Assembly: GCF_001194135.2 (NCBI RefSeq)
Contig: NC_069001.1
Location: 14,029,956-14,075,916, forward strand
Length of the DNA: 45,961 nucleotides
Reading direction: 5' to 3'
From: Octopus bimaculoides
Lineage: Eukaryota
This document shows positions 15,717 to 45,961 of this stretch, piece by piece (the stretch's first letter is position 1; every line of letters starts with the position of its first letter). The notes below the pieces were generated by a model that made no database searches, was not told the origin of the DNA, and saw nothing but the letters and a program-made list of their open reading frames with translations. Made by a program: the position numbers and the translations under genes.

Positions 15717-16310
15717 GAGTGGAGAGACAAGCCAAGTTGACCCTTGCTGTGTATGAACTGGAGAGCTGGGGGGTTTGACTGACTGAATCCACCCCTGATT
15801 CTATGCCACAAACTTTCTGTTTAAAAGTGATCAAAATTTCATGTTAATTTATATCCCAATTAACTAAATTCTTCTAGTCTAACAAAAACATAGTAAGAAA
15901 AGGATTCATGTGTTAGATTATCTTTATGATAAAGAAAACCCTTGGTCACTTTCAGACTACTGTATATATTATAAGATGTGATTATATAGTTATATGCTAT
16001 ATAATGTGTGTACATATGGTGTGTGTTGTTTTTTTTTTCTTTTTTGTATACTATATATATGTGTGTGTTTTATATAAATTCATATAAAATATATTTGAGG
16101 CATATTCATCTATAACAGGGAAATGTATTTGTGATAAATTGATCCATGAAATTAAGCTCTTATGTCTTAGGTTTACACACACATGTATACATACATGTGT
16201 AAATATAATATATATACATGAGCTATAATGTACATTTATATATACATTTTACCTTATTTATATACAGATGCATTTGTGTGCAAGTGTGTATATATGTCTA
16301 TCTGCTTGCT

Positions 16311-22066: not shown

Positions 22067-23631
22067 TATCAGGTCATCCCATAAATTCTGTCCGATTTTA
22101 CCTTTTTTAAAATTGAATGAAATTTAATAGTATTTTAGAATGTCTAATGGAATTAAAAATTATTTTTATGCATTTGTGTATATTTAAACTAATTAAATAT
22201 TATTTTACAGAATAATAGAATTAAAGTTTCTTTGATTAAAACCCTTTCTAACATGGAAGTATCCAAAGNNNNNNNNNNNNNNNNNNNNNNNNNNNNNNNN
22301 NNNNNNNNNNNNNNNNNNNNNNNNNNNNNNNNNNNNNNNNNNNNNNNNNNNNNNNNNNNNNNNNNNNNNNNNNNNNNNNNNNNNNNNNNNNNNNNNNNNN
22401 NNNNNNNNNNNNNNNNNNNNNNNNNNNNNNNNNNNNNNNNNNNNNNNNNNNNNNNNNNNNNNNNNNNNNNNNNNNNNNNNNNNNNNNNNNNNNNNNNNNN
22501 NNNNNNNNNNNNNNNNNNNNNNNNNNNNNNNNNNNNNNNNNNNNNNNNNNNNNNNNNNNNNNNNNNNNNNNNNNNNNNNNNNNNNNNNNNNNNNNNNNNN
22601 NNNNNNNNNNNNNNNNNNNNNNNNNNNNNNNNNNNNNNNNNNNNNNNNNNNNNNNNNNNNNNNNNNNNNNNNNNNNNNNNNNNNNNNNNNNNNNNNNNNN
22701 NNNNNNNNNNNNNNNNNNNNNNNNNNNNNNNNNNNNNNNNNNNNNNNNNNNNNNNNNNNNNNNNNNNNNNNNNNNNNNNNNNNNNNNNNNNNNNNNNNNN
22801 NNNNNNNNNNNNNNNNNNNNNNNNNNNNNNNNNNNNNNNNNNNNNNNNNNNNNNNNNNNNNNNNNNNNNNNNNNNNNNNNNNNNNNNNNNNNNNNNNNNN
22901 NNNNNNNNNNNNNNNNNNNNNNNNNNNNNNNNNNNNNNNNNNNNNNNNNNNNNNNNNNNNNNNNNNNNNNNNNNNNNNNNNNNNNNNNNNNNNNNNNNNN
23001 NNNNNNNNNNNNNNNNNNNNNNNNNNNNNNNNNNNNNNNNNNNNNNNNNNNNNNNNNNNNNNNNNNNNNNNNNNNNNNNNNNNNNNNNNNNNNNNNNNNN
23101 NNNNNNNNNNNNNNNNNNNNNNNNNNNNNNNNNNNNNNNNNNNNNNNNNNNNNNNNNNNNNNNNNNNNNNNNNNNNNNNNNNNNNNNNNNNNNNNNNNNN
23201 NNNNNNNNNNNNNNNNNNNNNNNNNNNNNNNNNNNNNNNNNNNNNNNNNNNNNNNNNNNNNNNNNNNNACCCCACACTGCAAAGATCACATCACAGAAGA
23301 TGGAAGAGCTTGGTTGGGAAAAAATTCCTCATCCACCTTATTCTCCCGACCTTGCTCCTTCAAACTACCAGTTGTTTCGTAGTTTACAGAATCATTTGGG
23401 GGACATAACTTTCGAAAGCCAGGAGGAGGTCGAAACTGACAATTCAGAGTTCTTCGCTTTGAAACGAAAAGAGTTTTACATTAATGGGATTAAAAAACTT
23501 GTAAATAGATGGAAGGAAGTCATAGATAATCAGGGAAAGTACATTGATGATTAAATTTCAATTAAATATAACATTTGATCACTTGTTTTCTGTCTTCAAA
23601 ATTCGGACAGAACTTATGAGATGACTTGATA
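22067..23631 (+). mobile_element. Mariner element with both TIRs; central ~1 kb is an assembly gap; transposase C-terminus at 23270-23554
   Basis: 5' TAtcaggtcatcccataaattctgtccga and 3' tcggacagaacttatgagatgacttgaTA. Protein PHTAKIT...HPPYSPDLAPSNYQLFRSLQNHL...YIDD*. Confidence 0.9.
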
Positions 23632-29140: not shown

Positions 29141-30344
29141 AGAAAGTAGTGTGTGTGAGTGTATACTAACTCATAGGGCTGATGAGGCACAACTGAAGAC
29201 TTCAACTTCATGTTCAGTGTCAAAAGAAAAGACGCAGTGGAATGTTACCGCTGTTACCTGTGACTTCTCCATGTTACACCCGATACGCATGCACAGGTAC
29301 ATTCTTCCTTACACACACACACACATGCATTGTGTGCTGCCTGTCAAACTGGTGGTATGTACCTCCCAATGTAAACGACAAACAAGGATCATAGACATAT
29401 CTGCTTGTCCCATACATTGGGTCAGATGAATATTTTTAACTGCTTGACCTTTCGTGATTCAGGGGTATCGATCCACTGGGAATTAGTACAACTCTCCCCT
29501 ACACACGCACACACAGAGCCCACAACTAGCTTTACCACAACCACCTCAGCTCACTGAATCAGGGATATAAGTGCACATTGTTGTCGAGAGCCGACTGCAA
29601 GATTGGTGCTTTTGATCTATAATACACTTTGCTGTTGTTCAGCCATTCTGATTTGACACCTCTGCATTGTGCCTATCCGAAGACTGAGAGACTGAGCCAT
29701 TCAAGAGTGCTGTAATTGTTTAATTGGATGCAAACAGTTTGTTGGGACCAGCTGATATCCTGTTAGCTGCAGTTGTCCATCACACAAGGAAGGGTGTGTT
29801 TTAGCCCTTTAGCATTTAAACCAACGATAGCTGCCCAAAATATTCTTCCTGTTTTATGTTCAAACTGGCCTGATCCAGCCTTTCACACCTACCCTACAAT
29901 GTTAGTCTATAAAAAAAAATAGTCACATAATCGAAATCTCAAGGCTACAAGACAATATCTGATTAATTCAAAATGATGTGAATAAATAAGCATTACATTT
30001 GATCAAATAATCTGAAACTAAAGAGTTAGGGGTAGGAGAGAAAGTGGTTGAGCTTTTAATGGGATTAAAGATTGTGGAGATTATGTGTGTATGTGGAGTA
30101 ATTACTGATAAATTTCAATAGCTGTCCTCTCCACTTTAGGTTTGTGCCCCTAGTTCCTACATGTTCCTATATGTATGCATATCGTAGGAAACAAAACTGT
30201 GGGGGTTAGGAAGGGCATCCAACTATAGAAACCATGCCAAAACAGACGGTGAAGCTTGGTGCAGTCTTCTCCCCAGCCAGCTCCTGTCAAACCGTCCAAC
30301 CCATGCCAGCATGGAATGCAGACATGAAATGATGATGATGATTT

Positions 30345-30389
<45 letters not shown>

Positions 30390-32170: not shown

Positions 32171-33585
32171 TACGAGGGTTGGCTGAAAAGTTCATAGGCT
32201 GATCCAGATACTCTCATGGAACGTTACCAAATGAGATTTATTTTTCAGCATGGTCACCCTTGTGGCCCACACACTTCTTCCATTGGTGCTACAGTGCTTG
32301 GAACCCATTGGTAAACAAACTTTTATCCTGTTGGTCAATAAAGTCATCATCACTGCAATACTGGTTCCCATCCAGTGGCACCCATGTTAGGGAGCAGATG
32401 ATTGTCAGATGGGAGCCAGATCAGGAGAATAGAGACGGTGATCAACCAGTTCAAAGACATGGTCACGCACAACCATTGAAACCAATGACATCTGTACTGG
32501 AGCATTGTCCCTATGAAACAAGACACCCTTTGTCAGTTTTCCTGGCTGTTTGTGTTTGGTTGCCTTTTCTAACTGCCCCAGTTAATTGGTATAATACTCT
32601 CCATTGATAATGTCACCTTTTTGAAGGTAGTCAATAAACAATACCTTTGACATCTGAAAAAACAAACTGAGGTCATCACCTTTCCTACAGATAAAATGAC
32701 CGTGGCCTTCTTTGGATGTTGTGAAGAGGGGTGTTTCCACTGCTTGGATTGTTTCTTTGTCTCTTCTGAGGCAAGTGAAATCGAAATCGAACTAAATTCG
32801 ACAACTGGCACCCATGCCAACGTCGTCTCCTTCATTGGACACGAGACTCAGCTTGCGAAGACTTATTGGGGCAAGCGAAAGCGAAATCGGGATGGCACCT
32901 GTGCCCAGCGTCGCCTTTCTGGCACTTGTGCCCGTGACATGTGTAAGGATTTTCGAGCGAGATTGTTGCCAGTGTCCCTGGACTGGCTCTTGTGCGGGTG
33001 GCACGTAAAATACACCATTTTGAGCGTGGCCGTTGCCAGTACCGCCTGACTGGCCTTCATGCGGGTGACACATAAAAGCACCCACTACACTCTCGGAGTG
33101 GTTGGCGTTAGGAAGGGCATCCAACTGTAGAAACTCTGCCAAATCAGATTGGAGCCTGGTGTAGCCATCTGGTTTCACCAGTCCTCAGTCAAATCGTCCA
33201 ACCCATGCTAGCATGGAAAGCGGACGTTAAACGATGATGATGATGATGATGATGATGATGACTGAAAGTGATACATCCTTTGCACTGTTGATAAAGCTGG
33301 AGCATCATCCCCTAATGTAGCAATCATATCAACATGAACGTTATTGGAGGAGAAACCCTTTTTTCTACAGGTTCTTGATAGTACCACAATGCTAAATTTT
33401 GTACATTTTCAAGGTAAGTTGCTACTAGTTACTACTGAAATCTTTGAACAGTGAGATGCCAGTTTACTTGGAAAGAAACAATTCAGTTAATAAGAAGAAG
33501 AGTTGAAATTAATGCCTGCAAGATTTCACAGCCCCTGCATCACTCTTTCGTAATCAGCTTATGAACTTTTCATCCCACCCTCATT
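32171..33585 (-). mobile_element. Degenerate mariner deletion derivative with both TIRs and a nested RTE 3'-end insertion (~32765-33260)
   Basis: Left TIR acgagggttggctgaaaagttcataggctgat; its reverse complement with 4 mismatches at 33553-33584. Minus strand contains an FELVDH..YSPDLAP-like motif. Confidence 0.75.
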
Positions 33586-36431
33586 TCACACATTAACTTG
33601 TGTAGTTGGCATTAGGAAGGGCATCCAGCTGTAGAAACTCTACCAGATCAGATTGGAGCCTGGTGCAGCCATCTGGTTCGCCAGTCCTCAGTCAAATCGT
33701 CCAACCCATACTAGCATGGAAAACAGACGTTAAACGATGATGATGAACAGCATTTCATCAGCCCTCTTGAATATTGCTTTCAGATCTTTCTGTAGTTTTA
33801 GGATATCATCAGGGCCCTTGACCATCTGTGATGCTTTTGTATCGTCAGCATAGCTGGTGAGAGTGGCTACTGTATGGCTGAGAGTATGCCTGAAATTTTT
33901 ATAAAGACTTCCTTATATAGGAGCATAAGTGGCTGTGTGGTAAGTAGCTTGCTTACCAACCACATGGTTCCGGGTTCAATCCCACTGCGTGGCACATTGG
34001 GCAAGTGTCTTCTACTATAGCCTCACACTGACCAAAGCCTTGTGAGTGGATTTGGTAGATGGAAACTAAAAGAAGCCCGTCGTATATATGTATATATATA
34101 TATATATATGTATGTGTTTGTCCCCTCCAACATCGCTTGACAACTGATGCTGGTGTGTTTACGTCCCCGTAACTTAGCGGTTCGGCAAAAGAGACCGATA
34201 AAACAAGTACTAGGCTTACAAAGAATAAGTCCTGGGGTCGATTTGCTCAACTAAAGGTTGAAGCAGATAAGTTGTACCAACAGAGAACGGATTTTCTTGA
34301 TGTAACAGAGTTACGTCCCTTGTAACAAAATCGATGAAAAATGATTTTAATTCAAAGGTTTTGTGTGTGTTTATATATGTATATATAAATATGTTAGGGT
34401 AAAGATATATGTATATGCGTGTGTGTATATTACTCTCTCTCTTTTACTTGTTTCAGTCATTTGACTGTGGCCTTGCTGGAGCACTGCCTTTAGTTGAGTA
34501 AATCGACCCCAGGACTTAAGCCAAGTACTTATTCTATCGGTCACTGTTGCCGAACCGCTAAGTTACGGAGACTTAAACACACAATATATATATATATATA
34601 TATATATACGACGGGCTTCTTTCAGTTTCCGTCTATCAAATCCACTCACAAGGCTTTGGTCGGCCCGAGGCTATAGTAGAAGGCTCTTGCCCAAGGTGCC
34701 ACACTGGGACTGAACCCGGAACCATGTGGTTGGTAAGCAAGCTACTTACCACACAGCCACTCATATATTTCTATGTTTATGTGTATATATACATATGTTT
34801 ATGTATACATTTACGGTATGTATGTAGAATCAATCCCTTGGAATACCAAGATCCTTCAGCCTTGGAATGTTCCCCTTCCTTCAACCTCACCCATCTCTGC
34901 AAAATATTCAGGAAATTCCTGAAATGGACCGCAACCCTTTCTCACAGCAGTTATTTATTCACCGAAAATCACAACTACGACATACCATAGAAAGAGAGTA
35001 AAAAGACAATAAATAGATTTAGGAAACCATTCGTTTAATTATTGCTTCAAATAGAGTTTGTAGAAAAATATATCTGACAATTCATTATAAGAACATGGTT
35101 TAAAATTCCTTTTTGATAAAAAAATATTGAAGGTTGCTTGTGAACCCACATCTGTAGACATGAGAGGCATTCTATCATTATAGAATGATAGAAATTTTAT
35201 ATATTGTATATATTATGTATATTGGTGACATCATAATTTATAAACTTTTGAGAGAATGTGAAATAATTCTTATTCTTGGAATAGTGAATCTTGAAGTACA
35301 ACAGCATCATCATCATCATCATCATAATTATTATTAATATTAAGGCAATGAGCTTGCAGAATTGTTAGCGCACTGGACGAAATGTTTGGCGGTATTTCAC
35401 GTGTCACCATGATCTGAGTTCAAATTTCACTGAGGTCAACTTTGCCTTTCATCCTTTTGGGATCAATAGATTAAATACCAGTGAAACACTGGGGACAATG
35501 TAATCGACTTGTCCCCTCCCCACGAATTTGTGGCCTTGTTTATGCTTCCAGTAGAAAAGATGATGATGATGATGATTATAAAAATTATTATTATTATTAA
35601 GGTAGTGAGCTGGCAGATTCATTAGCAAGTTGAATGAAACACTTAACCCTCCCCACTATAGTAGAAAGGATTATGATCATTATTATTATTATTTAACGTG
35701 TTTCCCATGCTGACATGGGTTAAAGGGTTTTGACTTTAGGTGGCAAGCAGGAGAGCTGCACCAGGTTCCGGTCTGATTTGGCCTGATTACTACAGCTGGA
35801 CGCCCTCCTAACACCAACCACTTTACAGAACATGTTAGGTGCTCATTATATGTCATTGGCACAGTAACTTTCATGTGGTGCCAGCTCAGGTGCTTTCATG
35901 TGGTGCCAACACAGGTGCTTTTTACATGGCACCAGCATGAATGCTTTTAATGTGGCACTGGCACAGGGCTCTTGCAGGCCAATCTTCTTCAGCAGAGGAA
36001 ACAGCATTAACACTTCTGCTGTGGAGGATGGGTCTTCTTGAGTACAGCAAGGCACCAGATATCTCACTCCTTTGTACATATAAATCTATATCAAATAGCA
36101 TGTAAATATTTGGTTGATAAAACCCTTTTGGATAGAAAACCTTAAAGGCTGCCCATGGAACTCGAACCCACATCTCCTGTAAACATGATAACCTTTGTTT
36201 TGTTTTCTATTCAAAGGGTTTTTAACCCAATATTTACACATTACTTATAGTTTTATTTGTTTCATGATTCACCATTAAAAGAATTCATTTCAAGTTCTTG
36301 AAGTTTCTAAATTCTTATGGCATCAACAACTTCTGACAATTCTTCAAATTCTTCATGCCACAACAACAGATTGGTGGACCACCATCCACATATCTGACTT
36401 GGTTTTCTCATACTTTTCAGAAAAATGCTTT

Positions 36432-36467
<36 letters not shown>

Positions 36468-37462
36468 TTTGCATGAAATGTTTTTTGTGGGGAGGGATAC
36501 AATTACCATTTTATATTGAAATGTACAGTGTGGTCCTTAGTGAGGTAGATCAATGTCAATGATATAACTGTAAAAACAGATCTGTAGGTCACTGTTCAGT
36601 CCTTCAGCCAATTATATATGTACCATAAGACTGCTCAATCAAAGTTGACCTCCAGGTATCTAACAACAACTACACACATTGTGGTTTTTGTTTTTTGTAA
36701 TAATGTAAACTAGAGGTAGTATGTTAAGTATGATCCTGCCTATTACGTACAATTCAACTTTTCTTCTAATAACCCCTGTACTTTGTCTTTACCATTAGTG
36801 CTTCTTACATAGACTTAACCATTTCTTCTCAATAACTCCAGAAAGTGTGAACTTCGATAAAATATCTACTCTTTCTCATACAACTAGCCATTTGCTCTGA
36901 TTAACCCGAGTTCTTAGTCCTTATGAATGCTGTATCTTAACCCTTTTGTTACCGTATTCCCATTGAAACACACTGCCTTTATTTCAATTAATTCTAAGAA
37001 TAATGAAGAATTTAATGAAATACCTTTGTGCTTACCAATCTGGTCTTTGAAACAAGTTAATGTGAAATTTTGGAGAAATGTTTTAAAATTAGAGCATTTA
37101 AAACAAGATGTTTTGTATCATAGAATCAGGGTTGGTTTTAGATGGATTGGTGTCAAAAGCTATTCATTCCTGTACACTTGGCCATTTCCTCTGAATAACC
37201 CCAGCAGTTGTTCCTTACCATTAATGCTGAAATACCTACTCATTCCCATACATCTCGCAATTTTCTCTGAGTAACCCCAGTACTTAGCCATTATCGTTCT
37301 TTTACACTGCCCTGTTATCCGATGAATTTACTATTCACCATATAGGGCTTAAGAGTACCTTTTACAGTTCATCATCCAGGCCTACTAATAATTTCTCTTA
37401 CTTATCAAGTGGATTCTTAGTTCGTTAGTAATCTCGTTGTTTTGTGTGCTTCCTCGTTAACT

Positions 37463-37818
37463 TTACTGGTTGTCCTGCTTATCAACATCATTTGTAACCT
37501 TATTGTTATCGTCTGAATACACTTTGGCCAAAATGACAGTCAGCTGGTTTTTAAGACCCTCAACTTCTCTGGATAAATCTGTTCCTAAGATCTGTTTCTT
37601 GACGTACATACTTAGTACTTGCTTGTTAAGTACTTCAGCAGTGGTGCTGTCGGATGGTACTGCATCGGGATTTGTTGCTGCACCATAAGGCCAGGCAAAC
37701 AGAAGCATTGTTACCATGTGTAAATTGTGTACAGCTTTGTATGGTTTCGAAGATTTAGAGTTTTCACATTTTTGCGCTGGTTGACAGATGCATGTTGGGG
37801 CCTTGTACTTCTTCTCAC
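37463..37818 (-). CDS. PCS: Phytochelatin synthase coding exon 4 (C-terminal; ends ...DVDKQDNQ*)
   Basis: Acceptor aatttcag| at 37819, phase 1 matches the preceding exon. Open to TAA at 37465-37463. Confidence 0.75.
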
Positions 37819-38416
37819 CTGAAATTATAGACACAATAGTAAACTTAATTAGCGACTAATTACTAAGATGCTCAATGTTATATGTATGTATATATAGGTT
37901 AACAAACAAATGAGTACTTGCGTGGATTCATCATCATCATCGTCGTCGTTTAACATCCGCTTTCCATGCTAGCATGGGTTGGACGATTTGACTGAGGACT
38001 GGTGAAACCAGATGGCTACACCAGACTCCAATCTAATTTGGCCGAGTTTCTATAGCTGGATGCCCTTCCTAATGCCAACCACTCAGAGAGTGTAGTGGGT
38101 GCTTTTTACGTGCCACCGGCACGAAAGCCAGTCAGGTGGTACTAGCAACGGCCACGCTCAAAATGGTGTATTTTATGTGCCACCCGCACAAGAGCCAGTC
38201 CAGGGGCACTGGCAACGATCTCGCTCCAAAGTCCTTACACATGCCGCGGGCACAAGTGCCATTCATTTGACTAAAAATTCTTCAAGGCAACTGGCGGTGC
38301 CGCAGCATGGCTGCAGTCTAATGACTGAGACAAGTAAAAGATAAAAGACACAAATGCAATGCACACATTCACACACACACATTCCTTCAGATGAGAGTTA
38401 AGTTGCTAATACTGAC

Positions 38417-38788
38417 CATGTTGTGAAACCAGCAAATAAAGGTCGGTCTTCTCAAGTTTCTCTAACAGCAATTCTTTGGTACATTGGAACTTCTCTTGCA
38501 GATCACAAGGACATTTCTTGTCAAGAACATGTGTGTCCAGGAGCCAGTTCTCTACCTTCAGATCATTCAGTAGCTTCATTATACAGCCAATCGCCTCCGT
38601 GATGGTCACAAGACAATCTGTGGCCTCGGATTGGTGCTCCAAGAAATCCCACCATTTTTGAACAAAAGTCATAATGTCTGCTGGCATTATGGAATGAATT
38701 ACCAGACTTAGTTGAGAAGACACACAGAATAAAACAGGGTGCTCACAGCCTGTATTCTTGCTCAGCAGTACATAACCTCGGAGAGTTC
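38417..38788 (-). CDS. PCS: Phytochelatin synthase coding exon 3 (G-TLRGYVLLSK...VSQH-G)
   Basis: Acceptor tttgcag|, donor G|GTCAGT, 372 nt, phase 1/1. RGYVLLSK matches the PCS RGFMLIS/RGY motif ending the catalytic domain. Confidence 0.88.
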
Positions 38789-39998
38789 CTGCAAAAAAAT
38801 AATGAAAAGTTACATTTTCGTAAATTGCAAAGAATAGTCAAAAACTGCCAAGACTCGACTGTGATCAATATTGGTTGACTATATCTCTTTTACTTGTTTC
38901 AGTCATTTGACTGAGGCCATGCTGGAGCACCACCTTTAGTCGAGCAAATCAACCCCAGGACTTATTCTTTGTAAGCCTAGTACTTATTCTATTGGTCTCT
39001 TTTTGCCGAACCGCTAAGTTACGGGGATGTAAACACACCAGCCTCGGTTCTCAAGCGAAGTTGGGTGGACAAACACACAAACATATACACACATACATAT
39101 ATATGACGAGCTTCTTTCAGTTTCCATCTACCATATCCACTCACAAGGCTTTGGTCAGCCTGAGGCTATAGTAGAAGACACTTGCCCAAGGTGCCACGAA
39201 GTGGGACTGAACCCAGAACCATGTGGTTGGTAAGCAAGCTACTTACCAACAGCCACTCCATTTTAGATTATTCATCACCAAAATCTCCAGGTATTCAGGA
39301 ATAATTATACAGGAAATAGGACAGAATATGACTTAAATGCTCCCACTTTACACCAGGCATGTCCTTGCTGACATACTTATGTGACTTTAGATATGTGTCT
39401 ACACACACACACACACACACACTCACAAATGCGAAACAAGGTGATTAAAATATTTGAATACTGAAGATAGAGTAATATGCTTTTTATTAATGTCGAAAAA
39501 AATTCTTCAGAAACTGTTACTCTGAGTTTCATGTGACCGCTTATATATAGTATGATCACAACTGTCTGATGAAGTGGTAAAGTGAAACTGAGTATTTGTT
39601 TGTGAAGATTTTTTTCAGCTTTAATAAACAGTTTGACAAAGTATTTGGAGGAAGCAAATAAGAACTGTCTTGAGTTCTAGAACTCATAAAGTTGGTTACT
39701 TGGTTTCCATGGGGCACAAGAAAGCAAGAGCAGAATATTGCCCTCTAAATAGGATGCAAGTCAATTTACGGGGTTACTCATTTTATAGTAGAGTGGACTG
39801 GAACAATTTGAAATGAAGTATTTTGCACCACCCAGTCTGGGAATTGAAACTATAATCTTTCACTCATGAGTACAACACCCTGACCATGAGACCATGCACC
39901 TTCACATGTAGTTGGGTGAAGGAGGAAAAAAAAAAGATGGGATATTCAAAGCTGGAATGTCTTTGGTCATATTTACCAATGCAAAGTCTACTACTAAC

Positions 39999-40221
39999 CT
40001 GTAGCTTTGTCCTGTGTGTTCATAGCAGTGAGTAAAGAGGGTAGATGTATCCAGTGGGGTGGATATTTGAACCGGGCTGTGTCCATGATGAGGACCATGT
40101 CGCGCCCAGGGTGATACCCTGCAATTGGTGAAAAATGTCCGTCTCCAGTTTGTTTGAGAACTTTACGGGAATATGTGGCCACAATGAATGCATTGTCTCG
40201 TTTTGTGTAAGATTTCACAAC
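39999..40221 (-). CDS. PCS: Phytochelatin synthase coding exon 2 (VVKSYTKRDNAFIVATYSRKVLKQTGDGHFSPIAGYHPGRDMVLIMDTARFKYPPHW...)
   Basis: Contains catalytic His161 and Asp179 in the GHFSP and DxARFKYPPHW motifs. 223 nt, phase 0/1, donor G|GTTAGT. Confidence 0.95.
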
Positions 40222-41015
40222 CTTTTGTTTTGTTGGAAAATAGAAAATAAAACATAGTGAAAATAATTTCTGCTTTGAAAGAATTAAAACATTAAAAATT
40301 AATTTATGTTGGCTGAAATAGCCATCTGTGTAACATACGTAATACTTATACATGGTTGATAAACCAGTTATTGTTGCATTTGTCCAAAGATAACATCTCT
40401 TATAGACTTGCTGTGTTAAAAATTCAATAGATATCAGATTGAAATGAAAATTTGTTCCAGCAGTGGTCAGTGAGAACACCACTTGCAGTTTGGCCTTTAA
40501 GAGCCTTTTCAGTAGTCCATTCTTACATCCAGCCACATCCTTGGATGAAAATTTGTTGTCTCTGATATAGGAAAAAATGGATATGTAGTGAATCTTGCAA
40601 GCGTGAAGTGGATTCGATCCACCATAGCCAAATTTAAATTAACACTTCAACAGAACTTTTCTCACGGTGGAACAATGGTTTTTCTCTGACAGCAGTTTTA
40701 CATTTGCCAGACTGCCTTTAGCTAGGCCGAAATAATGTCTTCACCACCTGACCCTTTTGAAGCATAATATAATAGGTTTCAAATTTTGGCTCAAGGCCAG
40801 CAATTTCAAGGGAGTGAGTCAATTACATCAACTCTGGTGTTCAACTGGAACTTATTTTATCAACACTGAAAGGATGAAAGGCAAAGTCAACATCAGTGGA
40901 ATTTGAACTCAGAATATAAAGTAAGAAGAGATGTTCCTAAGCATTTTTTCTGGCATGTTAACCATTCTGCCAGTACACCACCCTCTGAAGCACCAAATAA
41001 TTAAAAGATATTTAC

Positions 41016-41411
41016 ATTTCGGAAAGTTTCTTCGTCTTTTGGTTCTGGACGTACAACTGTTGTGACAAGACAATTACACTGAGCAATACAAGTGAACTGC
41101 TCCAGACTGATCCCTTTTACCTTGACCACCTCCAATGGAACACAGCATTCCAACATGTTTTCATGGTACCATCTCCATGGACCTTTCCATGCAATACCTG
41201 GATCAATCTCCAGGGCGTTGAGTATCATGACCAATGTAGAGAGACCACAGTAGGCTGGTTCGTCCTGTGTACGGAACTGAGCTGCCAGTTTGAAGTAGCA
41301 GTTCATGTATCCAGACATCAAGGCTTCGGTGAAGATGGTTTTGCCTTCTTCGGAAGAGAAGGAAATGCAGCTTTCAGGTAGAACCCGTTGGAAGAATTGA
41401 CCCGTGTTCAT
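41016..41411 (-). CDS. PCS: Phytochelatin synthase (glutathione gamma-glutamylcysteinyltransferase) coding exon 1
   Basis: [44 protein letters not shown], catalytic Cys55. ATG in ACCATG context after an in-frame TGA. Exon acceptor at 41467, donor AAT|GTAAAT. Confidence 0.97.
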
Positions 41412-42513
41412 GGTGAAGTTATTTAGCAGTTCTGTGACTGTGGGAGTCTCCTGTCACCAATGGATTCTGTAAAATACAGAAAAATAAAGTTAACAAAAAA
41501 AAAACAGACATAAATATATAAATAAATTGAAAGGTGAAAATATATTTAGCAGTAGTAGCTACAACAAAGTAAAGATATAGTTGGAATTTACAAAAAACAA
41601 AACAACAGACGAGGACAGGTGGTGTAAACAACAAACAGATGTATTAGTTTAATGCTCAGGAAGTGAGAATGTCTCTCAGTTTATGAACACCTCTGATCAC
41701 GAATAAATCGTGCTGTATGTATGTATCTATCTATCTATCTATATATATATATATATATNNNNNNNNNNNNNNNNNNNNNNNNNNNNNNNNNNNNNNNNNN
41801 NNNNNNNNNNNNNNNNNNNNNNNNNNNNNNNNNNNNNNNNNNNNNNNNNNNNNNNNNNNNNNNNNNNNNNNNNNNNNNNNNNNNNNNNNNNNNNNNNNNN
41901 NNNNNNNNNNNNNNNNNNNNNNNNNNNNNNNNNNNNNNNNNNNNNNNNNNNNNNNNNNNNNNNNNNNNNNNNNNNNNNNNNNNNNNNNNNNNNNNNNNNN
42001 NNNNNNNNNNNNNNNNNNNNNNNNNNNNNNNNNNNNNNNNNNNNNNNNNNNNNNNNNNNNNNNNNNNNNNNNNNNNNNNNNNNNNNNNNNNNNNNNNNNN
42101 NNNNNNNNNNNNNNNNNNNNNNNNNNNNNNNNNNNNNNNNNNNNNNNNNNNNNNNNNNNNNNNNNNNNNNNNNNNNNNNNNNNNNNNNNNNNNNNNNNNN
42201 NNNNNNNNNNNNNNNNNNNNNNNNNNNNNNNNNNNNNNNNNNNNNNNNNNNNNNNNNNNNNNNNNNNNNNNNNNNNNNNNNNNNNNNNNNNNNNNNNNNN
42301 NNNNNNNNNNNNNNNNNNNNNNNNNNNNNNNNNNNNNNNNNNNNNNNNNNNNNNNNNNNNNNNNNNNNNNNNNNNNNNNNNNNNNNNNNNNNNNNNNNNN
42401 NNNNNNNNNNNNNNNNNNNNNNNNNNNNNNNNNNNNNNNNNNNNNNNNNNNNNNNNNNNNNNNNNNNNNNNNNNNNNNNNNNNNNNNNNNNNNNNNNNNN
42501 NNNNNNNNNNNNN

Positions 42514-42890
42514 TACTCCCATCAATGTAAAAGTCTTTTGGTTTCAAAGCGAAGAACTCTGAAATATCAGTTTCGACCTTCTCCTGGCTTGAGAAAGTTA
42601 TGTCCCTCAAATGATTCTGTAAATTATGAAACAAATGGTAGTCCGAAGGAGCAAGGTCGGGAGAATAAGGTGGATGAGGAATTTTTTCCCAACCAGGCTC
42701 TTCCATCTTCTGTGATGTGATCTTTGCAGTGTGGGGTCGCGCATTGTCCTGATGAAACATCACTCCTTTTTGATTCACTAAAGCGGATCTTTTTTTTTTT
42801 TCAAAGCTTGGTTCAAATGCTCTAATTGCTGACAGTAGACTTGAGCATTGATTGTTGCATTAGGTGGTAACAATTCAAAGTGAATTACTT
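42514..42890 (-). mobile_element. Mariner transposase fragment, same family as 22067-23631
   Basis: VIHFELLPPNATINAQVYCQQL...KGVMFHQDNARPHTAKITSQKMEE..WEKIPHPPYSPDLAPSDYHLF; truncated by the gap. Confidence 0.9.
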
Positions 42891-43185
42891 CTTACCATAC
42901 AGCCACAAGAAAATGCTTTGAGATGTTTATCATGGACAAAAGGAAAATGTAAATAGTTCCCATGATAAAAATATGAAAGTATTTTCTTTTTGATTCATGT
43001 GAAGCCTCTTAACTGTTTTTTTAAATACATACATACACACACCCCCACATACATATAATTAGATTGTAAGACACCAAAGAAAGACTAATACTATATAGCA
43101 AAACTTTTGGCCTCCTTGACATGTTTCCATTGTTATCTTATAATATCTTCAGTCAGCAAGTGACATACTTAGAGGTCACACTCAC

Positions 43186-43191
43186 CTGTCT
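43186..43191 (-). other. Candidate 6-nt microexon (AGACAG) or recursive splice site in the PCS 5'UTR
   Basis: Minus strand reads caCTAAC (branch point), a pyrimidine tract, CAG|AGACAG|GTGAGT. Confidence 0.45.
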
Positions 43192-43402
43192 CTGAGTTGA
43201 ACAAGAGGTGTGGAGAGTAGAGGTAACACAGTTAGTGATGGTTGATGTAGCAGGGTATTGTTAATGAATGTAACACCTACCTCTCCATCTGTTAATAGAT
43301 ATGTTGGTAAGTAGTAGATAGATAGATAGACAGATAGAGAGAAAGATAGACAGACAGATAGAAAAATAAATAGATAGATAGATTGATCGATAGAAAGATA
43401 GA

Positions 43403-44413: not shown

Positions 44414-45575
44414 CTGAAATCACATATAAGAGTTTTCAGAAAACAAAGATAAGGAGGGAAAAGAAAAGAAAAAGGAAAACAACAAATAAATGGAATGGTC
44501 ACGTTTTGATCTACTCGTTCAGAATCAATGTGGTGAGTAGAAGGCAAATATATGTGTGCGCGCGCATTGTCCACCTACTACCGCTTGACAACCGGTGTTG
44601 GTTTGTTTACGCCCTCGTAAGTTAGCGGTTCAGATTTTTAAAAAAATTAAGAAAAAAGAATACATGTCTTTGTATGTGTTTTTCCAACCACCACACTTGA
44701 CTTAGCAGTTCGTCAATAGAAACTGATAGAATAAGTATTAGGCTTTACCAAAAAAAAAAAAAAAGTACTAGAGTCAATTCGTTCGACTAAACCCTTCAAG
44801 GTGGTGCCCCAGCATGNNNNNNNNNNTCAGTTTCCGTCTACCAAGTCCACTCACAAGGTTTTGGTCGGCCCGAGGCTATAGTAGAAGACACTTGCCCAAG
44901 GTGCTACGCAGTGGGATTGAACCCAGAACCATTTGGTTGGGAAGCAAGCTAATTACCACACAGCCACTCCTACGCCTATTTGTAGAAAATTTCATTCAAA
45001 AATATCCATTTTCTTGAAAGTTACAAAAAGACAAATTTGGGTTGGTAGGAGATGGGGCACACATGCGTAGGGATGCTTAAAGGCTGGGTTAAATAGTAGT
45101 GTATTTGATTAGCCCCAAAGACAGAGCTGGGTGGGGCACACTATGAGAGACGGGTAGACTGAGCTGTCGGTCAATCGGGTGCAGCCCGAGGGTCCGGAGA
45201 TCTGAGGGGCCCGCACTCTACATATTAACTCTCTTTGATATCAATACTAAGGGGTCCGGTGAACAGTCCGCCCCCTGATGAGAGGAATCGGCCGTACCGA
45301 TTTCTTTAGTTGTTGTCTATACTATAACCCTTTCCGATCCGACCACCGTGTCACGCTTCGTCTCCATACAGATAAATAAACGGTGGATCGTCGGAGAACA
45401 GCATGGTCCACGTCTAGGCGAAAGTACTTCACAGCTGGGAACTCGCACTTGCCGCTTGATTACGCCGAACAGAGAAATACACAATATTAACAACAAGACG
45501 ACTACAACGATTATAATAACGAAACCATACCTAGGCAAAATAAACTCTCCCCCGATTTCTGAATCATATACATAC

Positions 45576-45860
45576 CTGCTGGTGTATATGGAGAGTTATT
45601 TGGGGCTGATCGTATCGAAGTTGGAATTAACACTTATTTACTTTCTTCGAGAACAACGATATGACATCACATCCGGGTTTTTTTAAAATTCTATATTTTT
45701 TTTTCTCTTTCAGTTAAGCTTCAGCCATGACGTCATACGAACTCTCAACGAACAACACTTGCATGGTTTATCTTTTATCAAACTAACCCGACCACACACA
45801 CACACACACACACACACACCACACACACACACAGATATATAAATATATTTGTGCGCATGT
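45576..45860 (-). promoter_or_regulatory. CpG-rich putative PCS promoter and first exon: donor CAG|GTATGT at 45576/45575, CRE ATGACGTCAT (45727-45736), CRE-like TGACATCA (45662-45669), MRE core TGCGCAC (45851-45857, -)
   Basis: Motifs read directly; CpG density visibly higher than in the PCS gene body. TSS not determinable from sequence. Confidence 0.5.
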
Positions 45861-45961
45861 GTTATGTATGTAAAAGCATAAATCAGAGGCATGAGAAGTG
45901 AATACAAGTTTATTTAACCACGTGACTTCTACAGGACCACACACACATATACATACATACA

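Follow-up and report, generated by a model that had tools for sequence, protein, structure and literature searches.

A conserved phytochelatin synthase gene in Octopus bimaculoides and its possible part in cadmium and arsenic handling

The window analysed here, a stretch of 45,961 nucleotides (nt) of Octopus bimaculoides (contig NC_069001.1, positions 14,029,956 to 14,075,916, assembly GCF_001194135.2), carries a gene for phytochelatin synthase (PCS) on its minus strand. The coding sequence (CDS) has its stop-to-start limits at 37463-41411 and is made of four exons joined by canonical splice sites, the three introns all being GT..AG with polypyrimidine acceptors. It is 1347 nt long and encodes 448 amino acids (aa) with no internal stop and with intron phases 0/1/1, which confirms the four phase-compatible exons and the 448 aa proposed in a first-pass annotation of this DNA. 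Exon 1 (41411-41016, 396 nt, residues 1-132) opens with the ATG at 41411-41409, is followed by the donor GTAAAT and carries Q49 (41267-41265), Y54, C55 (41249-41247) and C89, C90, C108 and C112. Exon 2 (40221-39999, 223 nt, residues 133-207), entered in phase 0 and left in phase 1, lies between an acceptor ending in ..acaaaag and the donor GTTAGT; it carries R151, Q156, H161 (40137-40135), D179 (40083-40081) and the run R182-F183-K184-Y185. The end of the catalytic domain and the first half of the C-terminal domain are encoded by exon 3 (38788-38417, 372 nt, residues about 207-331; acceptor tttttttgcag, donor GTCAGT), and the second half by exon 4 (37818-37463, 356 nt including the stop TAA at 37465-37463, residues about 331-448; acceptor ataatttcag), to which belong the CIC at residues 340-342, a WPY motif and a conserved terminal helix with E415.

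The introns measure 794 nt (intron 1, 40222-41015), 1210 nt (intron 2, 38789-39998) and 598 nt (intron 3, 37819-38416), and contain an interspersed repeat at about 40753-41004, a SINE-like (short interspersed element-like) repeat at about 38884-39259 and an interspersed repeat at about 37936-38076, respectively. SINE-like repeats of this kind, about 140-390 nt long and one in each PCS intron, have multiple matches at 75-93% identity in the O. vulgaris and O. sinensis loci. Upstream of the CDS, reading of the sequence places an in-frame TGA (41456-41454) 15 codons 5' of the ATG, so that the ATG at 41411, in the context ACCATGA, is the first possible start in exon 1; a plausible candidate acceptor, ttttacag, lies at about 41467 on the minus strand. 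The roughly 1 kb that follows the stop (36456-37462, minus strand) is conserved like the coding exons, with 91.5-91.8% identity to both other Octopus species, which suggests that it is the 3' untranslated region (UTR). A tblastn search of the window for a second PCS copy or pseudogene matched the four exons alone.

An alternative 3' end is annotated in O. vulgaris, where the 405-aa isoform CAI9738421.1 consists of residues 1-399 followed by IVVFGE and a stop. To make it, splicing leaves exon 4 at an internal donor and continues in a terminal exon that lies 3.45 kb further on (positions 16118-16125 and 19569 of the O. vulgaris locus L002). Both elements are conserved on the minus strand in O. 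bimaculoides: the internal donor A/GTATGT lies at 37606-37612 (its GT at 37611-37610), and the terminal exon, tcgtag followed by TTGTGATTTTCGGTGAATAA, lies at 34955-34974 with 1 mismatch and reads IVIFGE and a stop. It is therefore possible, judging from these signals, that O. bimaculoides also makes a 405-aa isoform ending ...QVL-IVIFGE, which would drop the conserved C-terminal helix with E415.

In a search of about 5.8 billion proteins, the 448-aa predicted protein was 100% identical to 'glutathione gamma-glutamylcysteinyltransferase [Octopus bimaculoides]', with the identical RefSeq entries XP_014771294.1, XP_014771295.1, XP_052831347.1 and XP_052831348.1; the same protein cluster includes the orthologues CAI9738422.1 (O. 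vulgaris) and XP_029649159.1 (O. sinensis). Identity to XP_014771294.1, an automatic annotation of the same gene from which ours does not differ, means that the octopus PCS gene model was already annotated. With its RefSeq entry and its membership of a well-known family whose activity has been shown in other molluscs, the gene itself is not new, and the remaining interest lies in the physiological hypothesis on phytochelatins (PCs).

The Pfam family Phytochelatin (PF05023) matches residues 8-212 with 288.8 bits (E = 2.3e-86; curated cut-off 24.9 bits) over positions 3-210 of its 210-position profile, a match well outside what chance would give. Residues 1-218, approximately, form a papain-like N-terminal domain in which C55, H161 and D179 make up the catalytic triad and Q49 is the oxyanion-hole Gln. 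The first-pass annotation had named this triad and set it one residue off that of Arabidopsis PCS1 (AtPCS1); the three codons are found in place, the spacings of 106 residues from Cys to His and 18 from His to Asp equal those of AtPCS1, and the offset extends to 13 further functional residues. Thus 16 of 16 AtPCS1 functional positions are kept with a uniform offset of -1, a count obtained by arithmetic on published AtPCS1 residue numbers against the octopus sequence and not by direct alignment to AtPCS1. Among them are R182, C89, C90, C108 and C112, whose counterparts we take to be R183, C90, C91, C109 and C113 in AtPCS1 numbering. Octopus E51, Y54, R151, Q156, F183, K184 and Y185 are the equivalents of cavity residues of AtPCS1, for which the literature gives the triad C56/H162/D180 and the cavity and oxyanion residues Q50, E52, Y55, R152, Q157, F184, K185 and Y186 (PMC3855540, PMC7586750). 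The cavity residues are needed for binding of the second substrate, and substitution of R152 or K185 causes the loss of >99% of activity (PMC3855540); conservation of the equivalent R151 and K184 in octopus therefore argues for a transpeptidase and not for a hydrolase alone. In an alignment of 42 PCS sequences from animals, algae and protists, Q49, C55, C89, C90, C108, C112, R151, Q156, H161, R182, F183 and K184 are invariant, while D179 is conserved in at least 90%.

A search of the PDB returned the Nostoc enzyme Alr0975 (E = 4e-31), with the motifs AYCG, GHxSP and D..RFKYPP, which hold the Cys, His and Asp, aligned. The AlphaFold2 model, computed from the alignment, reaches a mean pLDDT of 83.4 and a pTM of 0.83, and most of its N-domain exceeds a pLDDT of 90; by Foldseek, this predicted N-domain superposes on 6TH5, 2BU3 and 2BTW with E = 2.5e-15, a TM score of 0.89 and a root-mean-square deviation of 2.0 A. 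The enzyme of Nostoc sp. PCC 7120 (NsPCS, that is Alr0975; 2BTW, 2BU3, 6TH5, 6THO) has the same papain-like fold and about 32% identity to the octopus protein over about 210 residues. NsPCS is a 'half' enzyme that lacks a C-terminal domain, whereas octopus PCS adds 230 residues and is thus not of the prokaryotic half type. With AtPCS1 the octopus protein has in common the triad, the oxyanion Gln, the second-substrate cavity, the four N-domain Cys and the two-domain architecture. Identity is 39-53% to the PCSs of Caenorhabditis elegans (PCS-1), Lumbricus rubellus, Lymnaea stagnalis and Biomphalaria glabrata. PC synthesis has been shown in these four species, whereas the octopus enzyme is known here from its sequence and predicted structure; L. 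rubellus makes PCs in vivo (PMC3838358), and in molluscs synthesis is documented for Lymnaea and Biomphalaria (PMC6981842).

The C-terminal domain (about residues 219-448, about 230 aa) is predicted to be mostly helical and contains 10 Cys. It differs from that of AtPCS1 in having no plant-style twin-Cys clusters but the pairs CPC 299-301 and CIC 340-342, which are kept in all three Octopus species. In a BLASTP comparison with a plant-type PCS that bears PF09328, only residues 6-245 align, while the L. rubellus enzyme aligns over residues 5-428 at 39% identity with the C-domain matched along its length. The C-domain motifs W..L, LL..LE.T.L, H..T.LLL.WPY and E...L..QL fall within the L. rubellus alignment, and motifs are shared with other metazoan PCSs too. 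By sequence, then, the domain is of the metazoan and not of the plant type, with homologues in the other PCSs of metazoans. Foldseek returned no PDB analogue beyond the N-domain. PXA and KaiA_N came up for the C-domain only as sub-threshold noise and were rejected.

Selective constraint was assessed against the corresponding loci of two other species, O. sinensis (L001) and O. vulgaris (L002), with which the PCS locus of O. bimaculoides is collinear. The four exons map to both at 93-98% nt identity (exon 1 95-96%, exon 2 97-98%) and the splice junctions are identical. The encoded orthologues, CAI9738422.1 and XP_029649159.1, have the same four coding exons and 94-95% aa identity, the O. sinensis protein being 2 C-domain residues shorter than that of O. 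bimaculoides. The ratio of non-synonymous to synonymous substitution (dN/dS), calculated by the Nei-Gojobori method for O. bimaculoides against each species at a dS of 0.13-0.18, is 0.20 for the whole protein, 0.05 for residues 1-218 and 0.39 for the C-terminal half against O. vulgaris; against O. sinensis it is 0.15, 0.04 and 0.29, respectively. These values point to strong purifying selection in the catalytic domain, with the C-domain moderately constrained, and, together with the conserved junctions, speak against a pseudogene or an assembly artefact, both of which were rejected. The description of the gene as intact in the first-pass annotation is borne out by the open frame, the complete set of catalytic and second-substrate residues and this purifying selection.

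Annotated PCSs are also on record for O. vulgaris, O. sinensis, Argonauta and Sepia, and the enzyme is widely found among molluscs, with further protein matches in gastropods, bivalves, the brachiopod Lingula, annelids, cnidarians, tunicates, nematodes and a flatworm; these agree with the patchy distribution among animals that had been put forward for the family. The PCS 1-like protein of Argonauta hians is 64% identical to octopus PCS. In Sepia pharaonis two PCS genes, CAE1251003 and CAE1250999, share one 2.33-Mb contig. In a simple neighbour-joining tree, without bootstrap, the cephalopod PCSs form a clade of their own in which the octopod sequences are sister to two decapodiform subclades. 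This suggests, on the sequences compared, a duplication of PCS in decapodiforms, which appear to have at least two paralogues; octopods show one. A further candidate for a cephalopod paralogue, P0007, groups with Mytilus in the same tree, is probably from a bivalve and was set aside. Decapodiform PCS is represented by many Logan contigs of 1.7-2.5 kb with full open reading frames (ORFs), that is, by transcripts. One of them, the Sepia-type L003, is 2004 nt long and holds an uninterrupted 531-aa ORF with UTRs, and thus represents a spliced mRNA; the decapodiform homologue is therefore transcribed.

The place of this enzyme in metal handling has to be considered beside metallothionein (MT). The first-pass annotation had suggested that canonical MTs are difficult to find in coleoids, and this is contradicted by published MTs of O. 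bimaculoides, O. vulgaris and Sepia (PMC7826182). Calatayud et al. 2020 (PMC7826182) assign ObiMT1, OvuMT1 and SesMT1 (Sepia esculenta) to the alpha/beta1 type, with lengths of 69-73 aa and 19-21 Cys, and describe these coleoid forms as 'slightly divergent' from the Nautilus form, their Cys pattern being slightly degenerate. The Nautilus MT is a genuine cadmium (Cd)-thionein, and in O. vulgaris the level of MT reportedly follows that of Cd (PMC9781358). Among gastropods no major clade lacks PCS genes; Biomphalaria combines a non-selective MT with PCs made under Cd, and Arion has a Cd-selective MT by which Cd is detoxified solely (PMC6981842). Possession of a PCS gene is therefore no sign in itself of a large role for PCs, and the snail model would expect reliance on PCs only where the coleoid MT is non-selective or poorly inducible. 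When Octopus was given Cd-loaded mussels as food, most of the cytosolic liver Cd was found with ligands of 2-3 kDa, smaller than MT, which the authors tentatively ascribe to MT proteolysis or to a single-domain MT (Isani and Carpene, PMC4101491). According to what PMC5397501 and PMC4101491 relate of Bustamante 2002 and Craig & Overnell 2003, MT takes part in the binding of Cd in cephalopods to a limited extent or in a manner inconsistent with exposure. The searched literature offered no link between PCs and cephalopods beyond incidental co-mentions. Nicosia et al. 2015 (PMC4326271), considered as a source for Cd-induced MT in octopus paralarvae, was not used, MT appearing there only in the reference list.

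Altogether, we favour the reading, with a probability of about 0.8, that the locus holds an intact, selectively maintained, single-copy PCS (EC 2.3.2.15), whose mechanism would be the one inferred from its homologues and which would provide an auxiliary route for Cd and arsenic (As) beside MT. By analogy with NsPCS and AtPCS1, C55 would attack glutathione (GSH), glycine would leave and a gamma-Glu-Cys thioester would form. A second GSH or a PCn, as a metal bis-thiolate such as Cd-GS2, would then enter the adjacent cavity, putatively formed by Q49, Y54, R151, K184 and Y185, and its free amine would take the dipeptide to give (gamma-Glu-Cys)n+1-Gly. The C-terminal domain may tune metal activation, and when the acceptor is absent the same chemistry would hydrolyse GSH or GS-conjugates. 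Physiologically, the enzyme would provide an auxiliary route for these two elements, constitutive and activated by metal, alongside octopus MT and not replacing it.

Several points weigh against this interpretation. The Octopus PCS protein cluster is genome-derived only and has no Logan members, while the Sepia-type clusters have dozens, a difference that could be due to low expression or to uneven sampling. The searchable literature contained no enzymatic, metabolite or expression data on a cephalopod PCS. The C-domain has no Pfam match, PF09328 included, either with the whole protein at E <= 0.01 or with residues 218-448 at E <= 10. Besides, C265 and C275 are not conserved within Octopus, the former being replaced by Tyr in O. 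vulgaris and the latter by His in O. vulgaris as well as O. sinensis; together with the lack of a Pfam match, this makes metal sensing by the C-domain an extrapolation. An assembly gap of 755 N (41759-42513) comes within 348 nt of the start codon of PCS on its 5' side and renders the promoter and any 5' non-coding exon unreadable. As a separate observation, metal-response elements (TGCRCNC) are not enriched in the window, with 18 present and 20.6 expected, the promoter being hidden by the gap.

A more far-reaching role, raised in the first-pass annotation, in which PCs and not MT are a main carrier and detoxifier of Cd in the octopus digestive gland, appears unlikely to us, and so does its corollary, a tentative one, that Cd-PC complexes constitute the 2-3 kDa pool that binds Cd, Cu and Zn in digestive-gland cytosol. 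Complexes of Cd with PCs would fall in the range of 2-3 kDa. The small liver ligands of Cd-fed Octopus (PMC4101491) would thus be accommodated, as would the limited or inconsistent share of MT in cephalopod Cd binding, as far as it is recounted in PMC5397501 and PMC4101491; the degenerate Cys pattern of coleoid MTs would, on the snail model (PMC6981842), favour a PC back-up, and octopus PCS is itself intact and constrained. Its premise fails, however, with the MT genes of O. bimaculoides, O. vulgaris and Sepia, to which are added the Nautilus Cd-thionein and the O. vulgaris MT that tracks Cd (PMC9781358). The 2-3 kDa pool was assigned by its own authors to MT proteolysis or single-domain MT, PCS is present in essentially all gastropods and yet Arion uses MT solely, and no measurement of PCs in a cephalopod was met in the searched literature. 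If PCs did carry a major share of the coleoid Cd burden, which is very high, in place of MT, this would explain decades of inconsistent results on 'MT-like proteins', and the decapodiform PCS duplication could be an adaptation to Cd load. The ligand of Cd in cephalopods has been debated for decades between MT-like proteins, high-molecular-weight proteins and the 2-3 kDa pool, and cephalopods concentrate Cd in the digestive gland to levels relevant to food safety and to the top predators that take it up with them. The PCS that all coleoids examined have, intact and constrained, is a candidate for the origin of that pool.

The enzyme might also serve mainly as a peptidase that removes glycine from GSH or GS-conjugates, in xenobiotic catabolism or thiol turnover, with PC synthesis as a side reaction. 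We consider this improbable, although the acylation half-reaction with release of glycine is common to all PCS-fold enzymes, the superposed Nostoc enzyme has been called a 'primitive' PCS, and a preprint (bioRxiv 10.1101/568113) assigns AtPCS1 a role in defence that does not depend on PC synthesis. PCS is likewise kept in many animal phyla whatever their metal ecology, and constraint is much stronger on the catalytic domain than on the C-domain with its putative metal sensing; that C-domain is nevertheless a full eukaryote-type one under purifying selection (dN/dS 0.3-0.4). The residues for transpeptidation, R151, K184, Y54, Q156, F183 and Y185, are all conserved, AtPCS1 mutants in R152 and K185 lose more than 99% of their activity (PMC3855540), and close animal relatives make PCs in vivo. 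A silent or decaying relic, with a predicted ORF that is unexpressed or non-functional, is highly improbable: the want of a transcript-derived member in the Octopus cluster would fit it, but the reading frame is free of stops and frameshifts, three Octopus species share the canonical splice sites, and catalytic-domain dN/dS is 0.04-0.05 at a dS of 0.13-0.18. In addition, no functional residue has been lost, conservation of the probable 3' UTR is about 92%, Argonauta has an orthologue and decapodiforms transcribe paralogues.

Other features of the window concern its neighbouring gene and its repeats. In the O. vulgaris locus (L002 1-9990), a gene for a DUF4735 protein lies directly upstream of PCS on the same strand. 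Positions 42887-43266 and 44979-45961 of the window are collinear with the DUF4735 part of that locus at about 83% identity, and the right end of the window probably contains part of the orthologous gene. Remnants of mariner-like transposases lie at 41735-42778 (minus strand), bordering the N gap 41759-42513, and at 22232-23554 (plus strand), around another N gap (22269-23268). One mariner-like remnant, with the motif ...HQDNARPHTA...PYSPDLAPSDYHLF, matches DDE_3 at E = 1e-5, which is under the Pfam cut-off. Other interspersed repeats, at 30199-30350, 32967-33258, 33602-33746, 33928-34257 and 44827-44971, show the same cross-locus matches as those in the PCS introns. Finally, an uninterrupted, ATG-initiated ORF of 306 aa (MGKGQRLRGAVKEYQWDD...), for which no Pfam family was found at E <= 0.01, occupies 675-1595 of the plus strand and is unusually long for AT-rich, repeat-laden sequence.

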